Positions 946 through 48,462 of a DNA stretch of 64,000 bases are shown piece after piece. The notes below the pieces were generated by a model. The model ran no database searches. It was given only the letters and a program-made list of their open reading frames with translations, and was not told the DNA's origin. The first letter of the stretch is position 1, and every line of letters starts with the position of its first letter. The stretch spans positions 744,001 through 808,000 of the forward strand of contig VJWM01000103.1 of assembly GCA_010909165.1 (NCBI GenBank). The letters are read 5' to 3'. This stretch comes from Anthoceros angustus (lineage: Eukaryota; Plantae; Anthocerotophyta). Both the position numbers and the translations under genes were made by a program.

Positions 946-1829
946 AGTCAATTTGTCGCTGACGAGATGCATCTGCCACGAATGCTCTTAAAGTTAACGT
1001 AGTAGCTGGTATGGCTTCACCATTCATAGGGCATGTCTAGGTAGAACATTCCCCCTTGCCTATAGCAGGTTGTGAAACGGGTCAGGAAATGCTACGACTC
1101 TAGGCGATACCACACCTCACCTAGCCTGGGGCAGGACAACGGAAATTCAATGGTGAGCCAATCTACAGGAGCTCTACGGTCTATTTTTCGACAGCGTCAT
1201 GCCAACTACACCTCTCCGACCTTGAAAAAAGGTTCGCCGCCAGGCCGAATGACAAGTTCTATCCTGATCCCACGTCAGTCTCATCCCGCTTTCTTTCCTC
1301 AATTTCATTTTTTCGAGTTCACTCTTTCAGTTATGTTCTACCTTTTTAGAAATAATAATCTGAAGGAGATGATTTGGTTCAATATTTCCCTACTAACGTG
1401 GATATAGACCTCATCCTTCCTCCCTTCAAAAACTTAATGTACTAATAGTGCTAGAGTAACTTAGTACTACTAGAGGCGTCTCCCTACGATGCATAGGGCA
1501 AATTGGTTTCCCACATGCGAGACTGGCAGCGTGTAACAAATCTTATTATCTAGCTATCTATCTACTAATTAACTTTAACCTTTTTATCTTTCTATTTTAT
1601 TTCACCAGTGCTGTTACTAGAACGATAATGATCGCGAAACCTGGATTCCTTGGGATTAGAGAGAGCCTGTGGTCTTACTACATGAGAACGGCAAAAGAGA
1701 GGAAGATAAGGGAGGTGCAGCGGCCGCAGCATGCCGCCTTCGTTATTATTAGGTAGGTAGTGAAAAAGAGTCTCGTCTACTCAAACCGACCAAACCGTCA
1801 AGCTGTGTGACATATTCGATGGGTTCTCA

Positions 1830-2669
1830 TCACAAGCGGGCGTACCAAAGTTGGCTGCCTTCCCGTAGCCCACACGGAAATGAGGAGGGGTGAGGAGGAG
1901 TGTCACACTGTGAAGGTGAAGGACACACAAGTCTTATGATCTGGACAAATTGCAACCAGAGATCTGGTGTTCGCTTCCACACACCGGTCGGATGAGACAA
2001 ATGCGAGGTGCCAACTCCAAAATTGGCAATGACCCAGGTCGGCAGATACCCGGAGAACGAGTTCCACATCTAGCATAAACCCGTGCCCAGGAAAGACCTA
2101 GATGCACACTTGACATACATAATAATATCTCATACATACTTGAATATCGTGGGCAGGTCTTTTTTGTACTGAGAACGCAACTCCCCAGGCAGATGCCCTG
2201 TCTCGGCCAAGTTCGAAATTCGCTGCCACTGTCGACATCCGCCGTGGTACGGAGCATCAGACAGAGCCTCTTTCTACCTCATTCGTCCATGAGCGAGCAC
2301 CACAAGACCTGCGATCCCCCGTTGGTTGCCACTCGATGGAGCTGTAGATGTGATGTAGATACTAGAAAGCCCTGTTATAAATGCCCTCGAGATGCCCTGA
2401 CTGCCGATGCCGACAACTGTAGGGCTCCCAAGACCTAGCGGCAATGACACCGAGAAAACACGAGCAATCACGCGTTCCCCCAAATCAAGGCACTTCGTAC
2501 CCCTCGTGTTCCGGGGGGCTACAGGCACTACCTTGACAGGCTAGATCGGACAGCAACCATCCGCGCACCACAAAAACAGCACCTGATTGTGATGAGGCCT
2601 ACACCTCATCAGACGGCCAGCTCCTTCACCTGATCTACGGGACTTGGCCTTCCTTGACCCTACCAGCAT
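1830..2669 (-). CDS. Unidentified multi-exon gene (tentative)
   Basis: Minus-strand GT/AG sites give a phase-consistent chain ...SIEWQPTGDRRSCGARSWTNE|WQRISNLAETGHLPGELRSQYKKDLPTIFKY|VFPGHGFMLDVELVLR|... The start (ATG 2669) and last exon are uncertain; no family recognised. Confidence 0.35.
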
Positions 2670-2900
2670 GTCCAGCCAACCAGCACGTCCAGTCTGCAGC
2701 CTGAGACCGCTACAGCTCCACACGCACAGCAGATTAGGCTAACTGTACACTGTCCACAAAAGACCAAAGCCGTTGCTCTCCAGGTCTTTTGTTCGATATC
2801 GTAATCGATGCGCCTTTCCCGGCTGTATCATGTCCTGATCGTAGCTCCATCCCACGGTAGAGACGAGTCACCTCACACGTCGGACTCGCCCCTCCAAGGC

Positions 2901-3701
2901 TCAGCATCCTTCAGAAGCCCTTCTCCTCTCGTTATCACAGATTCCAGATTCCCAATCCAGCAAATACTGTTTGGCGTGCAGGCCAAAGCCATAGCCTCCA
3001 AGGTTTCCAGCTTCCTTTCTTACAACACGGTGGCAAGGGACGATGAGACAGATAGGGTTTTTCCCATTCGCTCCTCCGACGGCCCTGCTTTTGCTTGGTT
3101 CTCCCATCATCTTTGCCTGGTCCTGGTACGAGATTCGTTGGCCAAACTCTATCTGCTGTAGCACAGCCCAGACCTTCTTCTGGAAGGTGGTGCCTTCTAG
3201 GCACAGCGGTATGTCAAACTCCTTCCGCTGCCCGGTAAAGTACTCCTGAACCTGCTGCTTGGCCTGTCTCAAAACAACAGACATCAAATCAATGCAAGCT
3301 CGCTACTTCCCTCCTGCCCTAATCTTAATGGAGACCTCTACGCTACAAGTAAGTGACAGCTTAGCTGCACCAGCTACAGAATGTGCCAAAGGTGACAGCC
3401 ACCATGATCCCTCTCTTTCAACTCCCGTGTCAAATCAACCGGCCACAGCTTACGTGCAACCGCAGACATGCTCTCACAGAGACGATTAAAACGTGAAGAA
3501 AGCTCCCACCCCAGCAACAACATCACACACAGCCTGCCTGACACCTACCAAAGCAAGCACCGGATGGCCATCTGTGGATGAGGTCAGACCACCAGCCGGC
3601 AGCGTGCCGAATGAGGCAGAGTGCAGGGCTGTGGCGGATGCCCCTAAGATCAGTGGCCCCAAAGGCGTGGTCACACTATCGTATTCCAGCAAGCGCTCCA
3701 T
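2901..3701 (-). CDS. MGMT: Methylated-DNA-protein-cysteine S-methyltransferase (O6-alkylguanine-DNA alkyltransferase, Ogt/MGMT family), ~171 aa, 2 exons
   Basis: Exon 1 3701-3549 (MERLLEYDSVTTPLGPLILGAS...HPVLAL), GT-AG intron 3548-3264, exon 2 3263-2901 (AKQQVQEYFTGQRKEFDIPL...ISYQDQA...SRAVGGANGKNPICLIVPCHRVV...GGYGFG). The ISY tyrosine, RAVG arginine finger and PCHR catalytic motif are all present. Confidence 0.95.
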
Positions 3702-3942
3702 GGCGGCCGATGTTCCAACACCGCACCTCCAGCTTCAAATCCACCATCTGGACAAACCCTAACGACTACTGGCAACCCGAGCGATATTTCCGAGAATATT
3801 CTGCCACCTCGAAGCTAGGAACGAACTTGCCGTGCAACAAAGGGATTTTCTTTGGAATTGAATATCACGAATGTGGAAGGCCAAGAATGAATGAAAAGAA
3901 TCCGGGTTGGACAGTAGGAGAGGAATCCAAGGATCCCAGTGT

Positions 3943-5419
3943 TCATGTCCAAGGCCAACCTCCAGCCTCTCTCCATCTGAACAGACGGGCTGTCGGTTCC
4001 TGGCTTTGACTGGAACGCAGTTCGGCATCTCTTGCTCGAGCCCGGTCGCGGTAAGCTGAACCATCGACGTCCTTGGGATGTGGCTGCACCTTCACCCCTT
4101 TCCACAGCAGCATGATTGCCTGCCAGCCAAAACAGCCGCAGTTAATGGCAACGAGCAAGACCACAGGACTGTCATGAGGTGAGACAGGCCAGTGTGTAGA
4201 ATGTACGCACCTGCCAGTAGATCCACAGGGCAACCTTGTGAGGCATGAGCCACAGAAAGGCCTCGGGACTGCCGACGCTCTTGTCATCCACTCTCTTCAT
4301 TCGCAGGTTAGCGACAAAGTAGTCTCCCAGCTGGGGATGCTGCACCTGGATGGTGAGCTGTAGGCTCTCCCCAGGGGCAGAAGCCAGCATCCGCCATGAC
4401 CCTAGCATGTCCTGTAAACAACACCAGCTTGCTTGGTTGGATGTCTGTAAACAGACAACTCTGCAGCAATGTAGGATATAATCGAGGATGTCAGGGCAAT
4501 GAGGAATACCATGAATGGACTGACGTGGAGAGGTTTGGCCACTGTGTCAACCCTGGGCTCGAAGATAAAGGTGACCCTCTCGCCCCATGGCGTATTAGTC
4601 ACCTGAAGGAAGCAGAATGAGCTGCAAGACAAACATGCCATGCGGAGCCATCCAAGGACTAAGCCGCTGCAACAATCTTTTTTCAACTGCAAACTTACAT
4701 ACCTCTGCTATGCATTTCATAAGGTCTCCAGCATCTGCTCCATAACAGTAATAGACACTGAGGGGATTCTGCTCGTAGCCCACACTTCTGAGCATGGTAA
4801 GCAGGTATCTGTGGCAACACCAACAACAGATTCAGCACTGGGAACCCACCTGCTGCCAACCCGGTCCAAGTACATGGTCGAGCAGCTCACGCATTCAGCT
4901 CCTACAAAGAAGGAACCACGATGCCTACACTGTTCCCGACGTCCCTGATATGGTGCGAGCCTGCTCAGCACTCAAATGCTCTTTGGCAGCAGATGACAGA
5001 TACCACGAGGGAGGACTGTCCAAATTCACAAATGCGTATCGAACGCGGTAGTCGAACTTGTGCACCACCGGATGCCGCCTCTCGTGCCACACTCTGCCTT
5101 CATAGATCAGACTGCCGCTGACCTTCTGCGTCTCCGCCACAAGCCCGTCCCTTTCCCCCTCCGTCTGGGTCTGTGATCTGCAGCTCTCATTTGCCTCGTG
5201 TTGAACCTCATTCTGCCTTCTTCCTTGTCGGTCGTTGAAGACCGACTTGAGCAAAAGCACAACGCTGCGTGCGCCAAGGTGAAGCGATTGCCCGCACGAG
5301 AGGCAGAACGTGAGAAGAATGCTGAAGAGAAGAGAACATATTTGCGCTAGCGTGCACACTGTGTCGGCAAAAGAGGACGAAGACCGTCGTGTAGAGGCAA
5401 TCACAGGGCACACCGCCAT
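3943..5419 (-). CDS. DUF1365 family protein, ~5 exons
   Basis: Motifs IYEGRVWHERRHPVVHKFDYRVRYAFVNLD, SVGYEQNPLSVYYCY, VTNTPWGERVTF, VAKPLHVSPFM, LMPHKVALWIYWQ|AIMLLWKGV and C-terminal FRWREAGGWPWT*. The N-terminus is hydrophobic; ATG 5419 is the last in-frame Met before the domain. Confidence 0.9.
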
Positions 5420-5501
5420 CTTCCAGAATAAAACGGAAGGAGTTTTTGGACTGCCTGTACAGTGATTAGTCCGATATATGTGCAGGATTTGGGCATGGAG
5501 G

Positions 5502-8397
5502 TCACAGCTTCCAGTACCATCCCCTCCAATGCAAGAATGCGGAGACCACACACCAGAAAAGGATCTCTCCGAAAAGCACATACAGCAGCATTCCAACCCT
5601 TGTTGACCCCACCAGTTTGATAAAGATATGCCTTTGGATCCACCACACCTGCATCGAGGATAGTATCAGCTCATCGGGTCTCCCTACAATGCCTGGCAGC
5701 AAAGGCGACAACTGCATCGTCAATGAGACCTCACCAAATCATTGCCCGGTGAATGAAAGTAGAAGCCCTTGACAAAACCCGAGAGGATGCCTTGAGCTCC
5801 CAAAACAAAGACCAGCATGGCATTCATGCCCACCCATTCCAACCATATCGTTGGCTTTCTGATGCTATAAAAATCAATCTGCCGGACAGGTTCAGGGGCA
5901 AGGGCCGAATGTCAACAAAAGATGATCACGCTTCTCACGTGAAGCTGAAAAACATTAGTGTATAGAATGTAGTGAGCTACCAGAATATAGAGGGCTGAGA
6001 ACAGCAATCCAGCAGCTCCTCCAGTGAAAGCAACGTAGCTTACGCTGTACAGCTGCTTGTTGATGGGTATTGCTGCGAGGCATAGTGTTTAGGTTATCCA
6101 CTCCAGAACCACAGACAGTGGCGAAAGCAAGCATCACTTACCATGGGAGAAGTGAAGAACAGTGCCCAGCAGTATAAGGGCTACTCCAGGTGCAACCCAG
6201 TGTATCAGTCTCTTTACATGGCCCTGCCAAACCCATGCAGCGACCAGGTGGCAAGCTTGTTAACTTCTGGAGACTCCTGGTGGTGGGAACAAAATCAATT
6301 GGATGGATGATTGCAGGAGAGGTTGTATTACCTTGTGATGGATAAGGACATGACCATAATGGATTCCCAGCAGGCAGCTCAGGATAGCTGATACCGAGCT
6401 GGAAGCCACACATGAGCATGTCAAGTATGAGCTAGGTCTGAATACCTCTGCAAGACTGATAAAGTCACGAACATGACGTTTCCTAACCTAAGAATGCCTT
6501 CTGGCTCAAAGGGACCTTGACACCAGGTTGGAGCATTGGGAGGAGGGTCACCGTCTGCTGGTGAGCTTAGACTACAAGCCTGCACCATAGCTTCTAAATT
6601 GTCAGCGTACTTGGGCACGATGGTTCGCCATGGGAAACCTGCATATGCTCATTGTTATAATCCAAACCAGCTTGAGCTCGAACCTGGGTTCGAGTAAATT
6701 CAGGATATATGTAAAGATGATTAACTCCTTGAATAGCACGGTCTACGTATCCCGCAGCATTACAGGCAGGTCCAACATGTCCCCTTACCCCACACTCCAC
6801 CTGTGATTCACAGACATGAGTTCAATTTCTCACATGAGCCTCATGTTTCGAGTCAAGAATGATCAATGGCTCAGGTCAAAAGCAGGTTTACATGGAGTCT
6901 TGGACCGGGTACATCATCCTGGGTGCCCTGAGCATCAAAATGCCAATCGGGCACATAAAGTCCATACTCTATGCTAAGATAGACCACAAGTATAACTGCT
7001 GCCGCATACCTGTGATGGCCATGTCAAATAGAGAACATGTTAGAATCATATGTGCAAGCCTTGAAGAGCACATGGAAAGAGGTTTCTCAAAGACTTCACC
7101 TCACCAGTGATATCTATAGAGCTTGAATATTGCCAAAGGTCCTTTCTTTAGCTCGAAGTTTCGACTCCTAGTTGTTGCGATTTCGATCATGGCAACCACG
7201 AAATATGAAATGGCAATTCTCTGGTTGGAAGGACAACACACCATACTGCCTAGAGTCAGCACCTTAGGGAACTAAAAGGCTCAGTCGATATGTGGCGGAG
7301 GGAATTCATCTTTCAGATATACCTGCAGGATGCCCATCCAACGAATGCGTTTCATGTCCACTCCGTAGCCAAGATCGTCCGGTGCATGAGAGTAGCCCCC
7401 TGTTTGATATCATCGCATAAATTTGTGAAGTTTCGACAGATGCCTCTGAAAGAAAGATCAGTACCTCTGTCTACTTCAAATTGCAGAGGACTGTGCCCAG
7501 AGTATCAACCTTGTAGCAGGAGCCCCCAGATAAAAAGCTTGATGGTGCGCAGGATTACCTTGTTTGAGGCTCTTGCTTTGTCTGGAATTCTCTTCATCAA
7601 CACCCACCGACGTGTCAATTGACCTCATCAACAGACCTGAAACGGAATATTGCTGTCTGGTTGACATTGTGAACAGTCTTGCAAAAAACTCTTGCAGTAC
7701 CTTGAGAGCAAGAGCGATGGCGATGCCCACAATAAATAGGAAGAAGGGCATGACAATGTCGGCGAGAGTAACTCCATTCCAAGGAGAATGATTTATTTGT
7801 GGCCAATAGCCCCCAGCATCATCCACCAGTATCATGATCTGGTAAACCACCAGAGTCTCAAGTAAGTGTTCACATTTCAGAAGCACGTATACTAGTAACT
7901 GCAATTCGCGAACTCTGGAGACGGTGCCAAAGCTGACACTGGGACAATTTGAAACACTAGACAGATTCACTTGTCAAAGTAGCAATGCTTGGAAGGCAAA
8001 TTTGGCTGGTGGGAACCCAGTTACAAGGACGGTGAGGCCTCGAAATGCGTCCAGGGAGGCCACTCGCTTTGCTTTCTGAGCCTCAACACCAACAGAAGCC
8101 GACTCTTTGACGATGTCGTCATTTGTGCTATCGTTGTACACCGCAGGCAAGGTCAGGGTTTGGTGCTCTGGCTGCTCTGGCAGAATGCTTACAGGGGCCG
8201 TCCACTGGCCATGGTTGGATTCTGAAGATTGGACGTCCACATGACTGTGGATTGGAGAGGTCGTCATTGCCATACTCCAGTGTCCGCCAGAAACAATTGT
8301 GATCAAGGCTGAGTCCCCATTCCAATATTTGCATGAGCCAGCTCATATTCGACTGTTTCCTCGTCGCTGCATCTCGCTGCCGTCCTACCGTTGCCAT
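5502..8397 (-). CDS. Heparan-alpha-glucosaminide N-acetyltransferase-like membrane protein (HGSNAT-like), paralogue 1, multi-exon
   Basis: Motifs RVASLDAFRGLTV, MILVDDAGGYWPQINHSPWNGVTLADIVMPFFLFIVG, CGVRGHVGPACNAAGYVDR, WCQGPFEPEGIL and C-terminal LLYVLFGEILFWCVVSAFLHWRGWYWKL* (stop 5502). The first ATG after the TATA box (8397) is one base out of frame with the domain, probably a sequence indel; alternative start 8273. Confidence 0.9.
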
Positions 8398-44257: not shown

Positions 44258-46048
44258 ATGGTGAGCGGGTCGCCAATTGGGAATGGCGTCGCTGCTGCCA
44301 CAGCTGAGGCCGCAGTCGGACGGCGGAGGACCGGCTGGCGGAGCTGAGGCAGGCGCTGGGCAAGGCGGACGGGGACCCGGTGCGGATCACGGGAGTGGGG
44401 GCGGGCGCGTGGGGAGCGTCTTCCTGGCTATGCTGCAGGATGCGTTCGGGCACATGCGGGAGCAGAAGAACCTCTGTTTGCTTGTGGGCACTCATCAGCT
44501 GTAAGTGATCGAAATAGATGGTCCAGAGCCACATCCTTGTCTCCACTTGCAAGTATAAGTGCTGCCTGACACCTATCTTCAGGATAACCAAAAGTTGCAG
44601 ACTCATGACTGCAAGACTGCTAGCATCTAGGGGTTCTTTGACGAACTGCGATTCACGAACCAATACCTGCACAGATGCCTTTGAGGATTCTGGAGCAAAC
44701 TTTGCAGGCAGTTTATGCTCCGGCACATTCAGAACAAGCCAATCAAGAGCCTGGGGAACATTATCTGTCCTGTCCACTGCTAGCTTTACATAGTCATCAC
44801 TAAATCCCATCTTCTCCAGCTGCAATTGGAGTGAACTAAGAGATACATCAAGCTGACGCATACCAGCTACTCCTCTCTCACACTGCAGTCCACTCACTGA
44901 ATTACCCTGCCCGCTTGCCCAATCGCTCTCTCTCAAAGAGGGTTCTGCAGTTTGACCGAACCACCGTGTTTCACGATCAGTAACCTGCATTGTGGTCACA
45001 TTGTTGTCTGTAGCACTAGAGCGTAAATCACCAGGGTTGACTGATATCTCCATATTCTTCTTCACATGATCACTGTTGGTGTCAACATTTCTGAGCAGAT
45101 CCAGATTCGCATCTGGCGGAGGCCGGACAAGAGGCTGGAGCGGGCGTCGGCTGTGAAGCTGTTTGAGGTTATTAATGCACGGGAGGACGTGCTGCGACGC
45201 CTGCTCGCAAAATGCGCCTACCTGAAGTATGTGGAAGGGAGGCTGGGAGACCGCGTGCTGTATGCCGACGAGATTTTGCGGGATGGATTTTGCATAAACA
45301 TGCTGGATACGCCCCTGTGTCCGCTCAGAGTTGTGACCGATTTTGCAGGGCGCGGTTTGGGACGCGGATATCGTCGTCAATGGCCTCCGTCCACGGAAAC
45401 CCGTGCCGTGTTTGAAAAGATCGGCAAGTACTGGCGTGAGAGGAGGACTAAACCTATCGTCATTTCCTTGGCTAAGGGTGTTGAGGCGGCCTTTGATCCG
45501 GATCCTCATATTGTGACTCCCCACTCAGATGATTCAAGCTGCCAGTGAGTGTTGAATTGTGAAGAGAGTCGTAACGTTTGTCCCGGTTTGTTGGCAGAGG
45601 CACGTTTGAGTTGCTCCAACCATTTTAGCTGGGACTGACGCGTGGTTTCGGATGCTTTGGTGGCAGCCGGTCTTTCGGACGAGAACATTTTGTACCTAGG
45701 TGGCCCTAATATTGCTGCGGAAGTGTACAACAAGGAATATGCAAATGCCAGAATATGTGGTGCTGAGAAATGGAGAAAAGCCCCTGGCCAGGTTTCTTCG
45801 GCAGCCTCACTTTATTGTCTGGGACAATAGTGACCTCGTCACTCACGAGGTGATGGGAGGACTGAAAATGTGTATGCCATCGGTGCAGGTAAATAGCAAC
45901 GGGCTAACTCTGCTGGCCATGCCTACTTGTTGCAATGGCAAGGCAACTGCTGACAGGTAGATTTCGGTGCGCAGGAATGGTTGCAGCTCTCACAAACGAG
46001 AGTGCCACCAGTAAGTCCGTGTACTTCGCACACTGCACATCAGAAATG
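44258..46048 (+). pseudogene. Truncated duplicate of cytosolic GPDH, interrupted by a helicase-derived insert
   Basis: Same sequence as 49137-50293, but 44466-45102 is a copy of helicase 41630-42269. It stops at ...FAHCTSEM. Confidence 0.9.
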
Positions 46049-48462
46049 GACATCTTCATAGCATCCTGATCTCCAAGAGGTCGTGCTTCCGAGGCTGGTA
46101 AAGATACGTCTGTGACTTCTTGGGCGTAGATAACCAAGTCATAGATCATAGGATCCAACAAATTGCTGAGCATGATTTGCTACCTTTCTGGTGATGTCTA
46201 ATAAATAATCTGATGACAAGCTGAGGTTACGAACCAACAACTGGGATTTCATGAGGATACACACATCCAGGAGGGAACCTGACCTGCAAAAGCGCTGAAA
46301 ATTGAAAACTTTAACTGGTGCCTGCTTACATGCATAACATAAGGATGGGAATCGTGCAAACCGGAAGGAGAAACCTGCGTACCTCCATTTCAACACTTGC
46401 GAGCTGAAAAGTCAGACAGGATTCTGAGATCTCGACTACATCATCTCCAAATATGGAAAGAAGTGCTAACTTTTCCTCAGCTGCGGCTGCTGCAAGTTCT
46501 GCACATGCGGCAGCAAAAGAACCTCTGTTTGCTTGTGGGCACTCATCAGCTGTAAGTGATCGAAATAGATGGTCCAGAGCCACATCCTTGTCTCCACTTG
46601 CAAGTATAAGTGCTGCCTGACACCTATCTTCAGGATAACCAAAAAGTTGCAGACTCATGACTGCAAGACTGCTAGCATCTAGGGGTTCTTTGACGAACTG
46701 CGATTCACGAACCAATACCTGCACAGATGCCTTTGAGGATTCTGGAGCAAACTTTGCAGGCAGTTTATGCTCCGGCACATTCAGAACAAGCCAATCAAGA
46801 GCCTGGGGAACATTATCTGTCCTGTCCACTGCTAGCTTTACATAGTCATCACTAAATCCCATCTTCTCCAGCTGCAATTGGAGTGAACTAAGAGATACAT
46901 CAAGCTGACGCATACCAGCTACTCCTCTCTCACACTGCAGTCCACTCACTGAATTACCCTGCCCGCTTGCCCAATCGCTCTCTCTCAAAGAGGGTTCTGC
47001 AGTTTGACCGAACCACCGTGTTTCACGATCAGTAACCTGCATTGTGGTCACATTGTTGTCTGTAGCACTAGAGCGTAAATCACCAGGGTTGACTGATATC
47101 TCCATATTCTTCTTCACATGATCACTGTTGGTGTCAACATTTCTGAGCAGATCCTCCACAATGCGTCTGTTGCCTTCACTCATAAACACAGACTGAAGCT
47201 CCTTAGGAGAAGGTTTTCGATTTTGCTTCGGCTTCGGAGGATTTGCCTTGAGAAAAGCTTTTCTGTGCTCAGCAGCAGCATCTAGGTTATGCCACTGTTG
47301 CCTGTACTGCTCAGGGAGGATGCGGTCCAGTCTGCAGGATCACGTTGCTTCCTCAGGAAATTGGGCTAGGATTGAGACCACCATTCATCATTCAAACAAC
47401 GCAATCAAGAAACAAACTGGTATACCACAGACAAACGAATAAAACTAAACAACAATGTAACCAGAATCCAATGATGTTGGTTTTACCATGTAACACAGTC
47501 CATTTCCGCTGGCCACCTGCCCCAACCAGAGAGAGATGGAAGCAACCAATGGTGCAGTCACACATAACAGCATATAAAAGCCGGTTGAAAGAAGATCACT
47601 CCCCACAAGCCCAACCCGCAAACTCCGACGAGATGCAAACCAAAGTACGTGACTCTAACGCCCTACTCTGCGATAATTGGATTGCTCATTTAGTTTCCAG
47701 TTCACCGACGTCCCACGATAAAGTCCACCACCTAAGAGCTGAGAAATTACCTACGGTCACCCATGACGTGGTGCAGGGCAACAACAGCTGCGCGATGCTG
47801 TGCTTCCAGTGACGCGGGCGCAGGGGCCTCCTTGTACCACACAATGACATCATCTTCGCTTTTCTTCCCATCCGGCAGAATGACTCTACAGTGGAAGCCT
47901 CCGTCCACCTCAATCTGGACACCACAAATCTCCTCACTTCCCTTGCTCCCATGTTAACGCACAAACAGAAGAGGGGGAGGAGGACTAACATGCTTGTACT
48001 TGGGCGTGAGTTTCTTGTTCTTCTGACACCACTCGTGCAGCTGCGTCTTGGGCGTCTTGACCGAATACGACGGGGTCTGATTTCCACTCCCACTCCCACT
48101 CCCACTCCCAGACGCCCCCACTCCCAACCAGCTGCTCAGCTACAGCTTGCTCCACACTGGCCCCTTCATGCTGATTCTTCAAATGCTCCTTCAACCGCCC
48201 ATCTTGCTTGAAAATCCTGTCGCAAAACGGGCACGGCAGGGGCTGCCCAATTCCACACAAAACGCATCAACCCACACTTCCCAGCAGACACCAAATTCAG
48301 CTGCCCAAAAAATGCACACACCTGCCCCGAATTCTTGGCAGAGGTAGGCCCTGCCTTCCCTCCACACCCCGCAGCCCCAGTTTTGAACACGTGACGAGGG
48401 CCCGCCGACTTGGGCCGGCCGGGGCCAACCCCCGAGCCGCCGCTCCCCGATTCCCCGCTCAT
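46040..48462 (-). pseudogene. Duplicate 5' portion of the DExH helicase (no helicase core)
   Basis: Near-identical to 41149-43579; start [23 protein letters not shown] at 48462. Confidence 0.9.

Follow-up and report, generated by a model that had tools for sequence, protein, structure and literature searches.

A spliced, bacterial-type Ogt gene in a probable hornwort genome, with moss and liverwort relatives and a predicted role in O6-alkylguanine repair

A published bryophyte family and the hornwort locus

Plants are described in the repair literature as having no homologue of MGMT and as handling O6-alkylguanine by other routes (review, PMC8258418). The closest described plant genes come from the Anthoceros angustus genome paper (Zhang et al. 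2020, Nat Plants; PMC7027989), whose Fig. 4d includes a horizontally transferred family with the PF02870 and PF01035 domains under the name 'DNA methyltransferase'. The relevant passages of that paper restrict the family to the three bryophyte groups, trace it to bacteria, with Actinobacteria as the donor, and call it 'related to DNA repair'; the corresponding passages of the supplement report two bacterial HGT families common to the three bryophytes and place an intron-bearing gene, AANG008038, among plant neighbours. PF02870 and PF01035 are the domains of MGMT. Hence, according to these passages, the presence of the gene and its origin by horizontal transfer are already published. The name given there and the accompanying reference 54, a review of cytosine methyltransferases, do not fit these two domains, which are those of the suicide repair proteins MGMT and Ogt. 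The misleading name may explain why reviews of repair still deny plants an MGMT. The family is not listed for Physcomitrella by Yue et al. 2012, and full-text literature searches linking methylguanine, MGMT or O6-methylguanine repair to bryophytes returned nothing beyond PMC7027989.

We analysed a 64,000-nucleotide stretch of DNA (the window) that carries a two-exon gene of this kind. Judged by its domains and phylogeny, the gene is an orthologue or close relative of the published family, and AANG008038, as the supplement passages describe it, is most probably its published locus. It combines PF02870 with PF01035, is a nuclear, intron-bearing hornwort gene, has moss and liverwort orthologues, and falls with them into one clade (99/97) beside bacteria. 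The two Pfam domains, the nuclear hornwort setting with introns and the plant neighbours agree with the account of Zhang et al. in the passages cited; the donor differs, being Actinobacteria there and not securely supported here. A term search of the main text and of the supplement passages of PMC7027989 found no mention of the shared intron described below. A sequence-only reading of the window had implied that such a gene in a land plant was new, a claim that gives way to the 2020 description of the family as a bryophyte-specific bacterial HGT (PMC7027989, Fig. 4d). The presence of the gene and its HGT family are known. As a member of an established enzyme family the gene is ordinary; its host group is what is unusual. 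What we add is the correct functional name, backed at the level of residues and fold, direct RNA evidence that the intron is spliced out in three species, an intron common to all three bryophyte groups, additional lineages, estimates of selection, a donor that is not securely actinobacterial, and RNA contigs that chain the alkyltransferase to its upstream neighbours.

Our preferred reading, with a probability of about 0.85, is that of a nuclear plant gene for a bacterial Ogt-type alkyltransferase that was acquired once from a bacterium, gained a phase-0 intron and was inherited vertically under purifying selection. An intact, expressed and apparently selected Ogt-type gene in bryophytes corrects the statements of plant DNA-repair reviews. 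Moreover, transformable bryophytes could reveal what direct O6-alkylguanine reversal contributes, and what vascular plants do without it.

Gene structure, transcription and neighbouring genes

Table 1. Features of the alkyltransferase locus in positions of the window
Feature	Position	Strand	Description
Coding exon 1	3701-3549	minus	51 codons; N-terminal domain, EYDSVTTPLGPL...HPVLAL
Spliceosomal intron	3548-3264	minus	285 nt, GT..AG, phase 0; RNA joint 3262>3548; precedes AKQQVQEYF codons
Coding exon 2	3263-2901	minus	120 codons + stop; end of N-terminal domain and whole DNA-binding/active-site domain
Transcribed 3' region	1801-2900	minus	same contig as exon 2 in the source species (1801-3264); extends beyond 1801
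Spacer, DUF1365-like stop to alkyltransferase ATG	3702-3942	minus	241 nt, transcribed
DUF1365-like upstream neighbour	3943-5417	minus	5 exons; separate from the alkyltransferase ORF

The coordinates and arithmetic of the two-exon model (Table 1) are exact, and the match to the family is far beyond chance. The spliced product has 171 aa and carries the motifs EYDSVTTPLGPL, ISY (Y97), SRAVG (R111), KNP (N120) and PCHR (C128); exon 2 supplies Y97, R111, N120, P127-C128-H129-R130, Y142 and E156. The ATG at 3701 lies in the context GCCGCCATGG, with an in-frame stop 12 codons upstream at 3737. A fusion with the DUF1365-like gene was rejected: the frames differ, the DUF1365 ORF stops at 3943, and in-frame stops stand at 3737 and further up.

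One sequencing run contained 99% of the sampled words of the stretch, and 18 further runs of two other organisms contained about 5-9%. We placed RNA contigs of four runs (three organisms) on positions 1801-6800 of the window (5,000 letters). One run organism is identical to the window, and the other two have about 92% DNA identity with it. Contigs of all four runs, covering the three organisms, skip exactly 3264-3548, and in both relatives more than 255 nt of contig sequence stands on each side of the joint. The same contigs also lack ten more GT..AG introns, which belong to the upstream genes. Since introns are spliced out, the runs are RNA, and at least three related species transcribe the alkyltransferase and splice it. 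The source species also has a minor contig that retains the alkyltransferase intron. The sequence-only reading had proposed a two-exon gene for an Ogt-type protein of about 171 aa with an intron at 3548-3264; coordinates, motifs, family scores and spliced RNA agree with it, and the transcript exists.

The region downstream of exon 2 (1801-2900) is most likely a long 3' UTR. A coding gene is ruled out here and the region is non-coding, because the relatives carry frame-breaking 1- and 4-nt indels together with a replaced 90-nt segment. In the transcripts of one relative a 90-nt stretch within 2431-2522 is replaced by 18 other letters, with 1-4-nt indels nearby, a UTR-like pattern.

Upstream of the alkyltransferase, and in the same direction, the window also holds a DUF5009/HGSNAT-like gene. 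It further contains a copia-type element, a germin-like cupin and a large DExH helicase. The best database matches of the alkyltransferase are bacterial or metagenomic, as they would be if the locus were bacterial contamination or an artefact of assembly. However, its GT..AG intron is removed in RNA, intron-bearing plant neighbours lie on both sides, the copia element stands in the same window, and in four liverwort assemblies the orthologues lie on scaffolds of chromosome scale, in conserved synteny with a GDSL lipase. The chance of contamination is negligible. The window is eukaryotic nuclear DNA, and its source genome is probably that of a hornwort, with which the gene tree agrees. Upstream of the DExH helicase exons (37.6-40.2 kb), two long minus-strand ORFs at 44259-47189 each carry a DHX29-type UBA domain; these are two separate genes or else parts of a single large helicase gene in which the UBA module is duplicated.

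The immediate upstream neighbour matches Pfam DUF1365 at 1.4e-06, and its four GT..AG introns are removed in the RNA contigs. In each of the four runs, contigs cover 3548-4118 without a break, and a single contig of the source species connects alkyltransferase exon 1 with the final DUF1365 exon. In the two relatives, single spliced contigs of 2,890 and 3,352 nt run from the DUF1365 exons through the spacer and both alkyltransferase exons and about 1.1 kb beyond, one of them starting within HGSNAT-like exons. On the minus strand of 1816-6072 the relatives' contigs chain the HGSNAT-like, DUF1365-like and alkyltransferase genes, whether by read-through or overlapping UTRs or as a polycistron. These contigs, and a spacer with a single, out-of-frame uATG (at 3747), are what one would expect if the hornwort alkyltransferase had no promoter of its own and were the last cistron of a polycistronic HGSNAT-like, DUF1365 and MGMT transcript. 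On the other hand, short-read contigs merge overlapping or read-through transcripts and cannot prove a single molecule; depth in the source species climbs stepwise toward the alkyltransferase (7.8, 24, 40, then 108-140), which fits an added promoter or 3' bias; and the alkyltransferase ATG stands in a textbook Kozak context for cap-dependent scanning. Nor is the tandem arrangement conserved. In a second hornwort-like lineage (contig L008) a homologue of the DUF1365 N-terminal exon (127-336, minus; 34% identity over 70 aa, E = 3e-5) faces the alkyltransferase (441-1442, plus) in a head-to-head arrangement and is separated from the alkyltransferase ATG by about 140 nt. Both hornwort-like lineages thus have the pair side by side, in opposite relative orientation. 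We therefore regard a promoterless last cistron as unlikely, and it is equally doubtful that in the hornwort and its close relatives the alkyltransferase is translated distally on a polycistronic mRNA with the DUF1365-like and perhaps the HGSNAT-like gene. If true, a repair gene obtained by horizontal transfer would owe its expression to the transcription unit of a neighbour.

Family membership, fold and predicted chemistry

The roles of the Arg finger, the pocket Tyr, the Asn hinge and the Glu of the His-water-Glu network are known from human AGT. Atl proteins have their acceptor Cys replaced (by Trp or Ala) and have no N-terminal domain. We found that exon 2 scores far above the cut-offs for Pfam PF01035 DNA_binding_1 (99.2 bits, cut-off 27, 1.2e-28) and TIGR00589 ogt (103.2 bits, cut-off 46.4, 5.5e-30). 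A profile of 188 full-length bacterial or metagenomic Ogt homologues aligns to residues 6-159 (195.6 bits) and passes through the splice junction without a gap. Hence, exon 1 encodes the N-terminal domain, and splicing restores a normal Ogt. The N-terminal ribonuclease-like domain (PF02870) is recognized through this continuous alignment; exon 2 alone, which catches just the last helix of the domain, scores 19.1 bits against a cut-off of 21, and the orthologues carry precomputed PF02870 matches.

PCHR is invariant in 10 bryophyte and 41 mixed sequences, and all residues known to be needed for transfer, PCHR included, are kept across about 13 bryophyte sequences. R111, Y97, N120, Y142 and E156 align to conserved columns of Mycobacterium tuberculosis OGT, of the bacterial profile and of human MGMT. 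An AlphaFold2 model of the exon-2 part (pLDDT 87.6) superposes in Foldseek on the M. tuberculosis structures 4BHB/4WX9 (TM 0.84, rmsd 1.3-1.4 A), and the top 42 matches are all AGT/Atl structures; a protein atlas search returned generic bacterial clusters only. Taken together, profiles, residues and modelled fold identify the window gene as a complete member of the AGT/MGMT/Ogt superfamily, for which alkyl transfer is predicted. Just before the active site, in NP(I/V)C, the alignments have Cys in most bryophyte proteins, Ile, Ala or Pro in bacteria, and Ser in the second hornwort-like sequence.

Among named alkyltransferases, the closest in layout are M. tuberculosis OGT (4BHB, 4WX9) and E. 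coli Ogt and the Ada C-terminal domain (1SFE), which share the compact two-domain form of about 165-171 aa with PCHR. The hornwort protein has the Arg finger of bacterial Ogt as well as its pocket residues Tyr and Asn, and identity to M. tuberculosis OGT is 47-50% (E = 8e-27, TM 0.84). Unlike bacterial Ogt, the hornwort gene is eukaryotic, nuclear and split by a spliceosomal intron, and its product ends in a C-terminal tail of 12 residues and has a single residue inserted after the active site (RKEAG). The protein falls below the equivalog cut-offs of E. coli Ogt (84.6 versus 192) and Ada (88 versus 345), so it is a member of the superfamily and no equivalog. As an Ada it was rejected: NF011964 matches over profile positions 248-349 of 354 only (88 bits, cut-off 345), and with 171 aa and an in-frame stop 12 codons upstream of the ATG the protein has neither the Ada-type N-terminal Zn methylphosphotriester domain nor the AraC HTH.

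Human and yeast MGMT share the C-terminal domain, and the functional residues map one-to-one: Y97/R111/N120/C128/H129/Y142/E156 of the hornwort protein correspond to Y114/R128/N137/C145/H146/Y158/E172 of the human one. However, human MGMT is more distant (E 7e-17, TM 0.62), and the hornwort N-terminal domain has no Cys at all, so that a human-type Zn site is impossible in it. The hornwort protein and human or yeast MGMT probably have no recent eukaryotic ancestor in common. Schizosaccharomyces pombe Atl1 (3GVA) resembles it in the fold of the DNA-binding domain (TM 0.56), but the hornwort protein has the acceptor Cys and the N-terminal domain, which excludes an Atl. The argument of the sequence-only reading that the retained catalytic Cys sets the protein apart from Atl-type homologues is upheld by C128 within PCHR and is strengthened by the N-terminal domain.

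An expressed gene could still have lost repair by alkyl transfer and persist as a relic, as an Atl-like damage sensor or in another DNA-binding role, and the insertion RKEAG and the C-terminal tail unique to the hornwort protein would be in keeping with such a change. We consider this very unlikely in view of the transfer residues kept in the bryophyte sequences, the dN/dS values of 0.12-0.26 given below, the Cys that Atl-type proteins do not have, and the close superposition of the modelled fold on active Ogt. We thus favour an Ogt-type alkyltransferase, for which the established chemistry of the family suggests the following steps. The helix-turn-helix domain would bind the minor groove of DNA, and Arg111 would flip the alkylated guanine out of the duplex and into a pocket whose lining includes Tyr97 and Asn120. 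In turn, Cys128, activated through the His129-water-Glu156 network, would take up the alkyl group irreversibly. Due to this irreversible uptake, one protein molecule would be spent per lesion repaired.

Distribution, shared intron and origin

With exon 2 as the query, the best named match is a protein of Riccia sorocarpa (62% identity), and the others are bacterial or metagenomic. The Riccia protein in turn finds R. fluitans, Marchantia paleacea, Calypogeia fissa, a Jungermanniopsida-like sequence and a tight moss group. No named Physcomitrium patens or Marchantia polymorpha protein is among the Riccia-query matches; Zhang et al. defined the family from those proteomes. The tight moss group is Bryopsida: its convergent At5g02240-like neighbour gene shares 84% identity with Ceratodon and 80% with Physcomitrium, and for this reason a Sphagnum label for these sequences (P0125-P0127, L002-L004) was rejected. 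An exhaustive profile search of 1.84 billion representatives placed liverwort and moss clusters at the top (321, 308 and 279 bits), followed by two exon-2-only ORFs and, below them, a continuum of bacterial-looking proteins. One of these ORFs (P0357, L007) belongs to a 27-member cluster from JGI/ENA metagenomes, and its contig carries chalcone synthase and LEA genes. The contig is therefore plant; its position sister to Bryopsida and the peat-type metagenome sources suggest that the cluster is Sphagnum-like. The other ORF represents the second hornwort-like lineage and is 64-70% identical to the window protein. Two proteins with N-terminal extensions, P0371 and P0134, were rejected as algal or other eukaryotic relatives, as both lie on compact bacterial-type contigs.

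Neither the named match lists nor the exhaustive profile search, in a database that holds many vascular-plant proteomes, yielded a vascular-plant member, and the profile search and trees contain no algal member of the clade. The absence from angiosperms assumed by the sequence-only reading therefore agrees both with the reviewed statement that plants are without MGMT homologues (PMC8258418) and with our searches. Its attribution of the repair route to one lineage was too narrow, as hornworts, mosses and liverworts all carry the gene, and it stands with respect to vascular plants (angiosperms), in which these searches found none.

A phase-0 intron occurs at the same codon, before AK(Q/E/L/V)Q..(E/Q)YF, in Riccia, M. 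paleacea, the Sphagnum-like contig and the second hornwort-like contig, the last two also having exon 1 homologues that end in HPVL(A/T)L. In a Bryopsida moss (L002:1185-1205) the intron is one codon off: the acceptor is a CAGCAG tandem of which the first AG is used, adding one Gln codon that is absent in hornworts, liverworts and the Sphagnum-like contig. The shared intron indicates that acquisition and intron gain both preceded the split of hornworts, mosses and liverworts. The Calypogeia fissa orthologue is intronless (L006:10001-10624). An exon-2-only ORF from a related Jungermanniopsida-like source (P0128) implies that the intron is present there, and the pair points to intron loss or a retro-copy in Calypogeia.

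In trees of 96 and 68 rows (IQ-TREE, LG+C20+F+G4) all plant rows form one clade (100/97 and 99/97, respectively). Inside it, liverworts (100/99) split into Jungermanniopsida and Marchantiopsida, the hornwort pair is recovered at 97/87, and mosses (100/98) have the Sphagnum-like sequence as sister to Bryopsida. The topology within the groups matches the species tree, which indicates vertical descent; the grouping of hornworts with mosses (93/69) is weakly supported and conflicts with the accepted species tree. For a pair of mosses the dN/dS ratio is 0.26, and for Riccia compared with Marchantia it is 0.12, values that point to purifying selection on the alkyltransferase in mosses and liverworts.

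The nearest non-plant relatives are bacterial, with weak support for the bacterial sister (25/85 in the 96-row tree, 77/79 in the 68-row tree). When only named bacteria are included, one Actinomycetota MAG on a long branch is a weak sister. A constraint that unites both sampled actinobacteria with the plants lowers the likelihood by 15.8 lnL units (AU p = 0.083, no rejection), and a plants plus Actinobacteria grouping is not recovered as a whole. The trees thus do not securely make the donor actinobacterial.

The weak sister support also leaves some room for vertical inheritance from an algal or older eukaryotic ancestor, with a bacterial look that reflects slow evolution and losses elsewhere in plants; green algae do have MGMT-family genes: algal sequences appear in Fig. 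4d of PMC7027989, and PMC7539508 came up in the literature search. However, the exhaustive profile search and the trees place no algal or other eukaryotic sequence in or beside the clade, and identity to bacterial proteins is 55-65%, compared with matches at E = 8e-27 to M. tuberculosis Ogt and at E = 7e-17 to human MGMT. The N-terminal part is cysteine-free and lacks the human-type zinc site, and the published analysis, in the passages cited, likewise concluded HGT (PMC7027989). Vertical descent from algae is thus a rather improbable origin. Between the two origins offered by the sequence-only reading, a bacterial gene later given an intron is favoured by the bacterial nearest relatives, and algal retention loses ground since the clade has no algal member among the sequences found.

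Overall, we suggest a bacterial acquisition, of which the simplest reading is a single transfer from some bacterium that predates the divergence of the bryophyte lineages. The data fit equally well with an older transfer and a subsequent loss from vascular plants, and a transfer into a pre-land-plant ancestor with loss in algae and vascular plants is conceivable. The gene would then have been acquired once, either by the ancestor of bryophytes or by a common ancestor of land plants whose vascular descendants lost it; the phase-0 intron would have been gained before hornworts, mosses and liverworts separated, and vertical inheritance under purifying selection would have followed.

The bryophyte proteins differ at their N-termini. 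Liverwort orthologues have a basic N-terminal extension of about 45 aa and an additional upstream intron, whereas the hornwort protein has no such extension. Because of this difference, the localisation of the hornwort and liverwort forms may differ. In Marchantiopsida (L001:10001-10099, L005:10001-10129) the extension is encoded by an extra 5' exon and ends beside the conserved LKKRGL; absent in hornwort and moss proteins, it may be a nuclear or organellar targeting signal.
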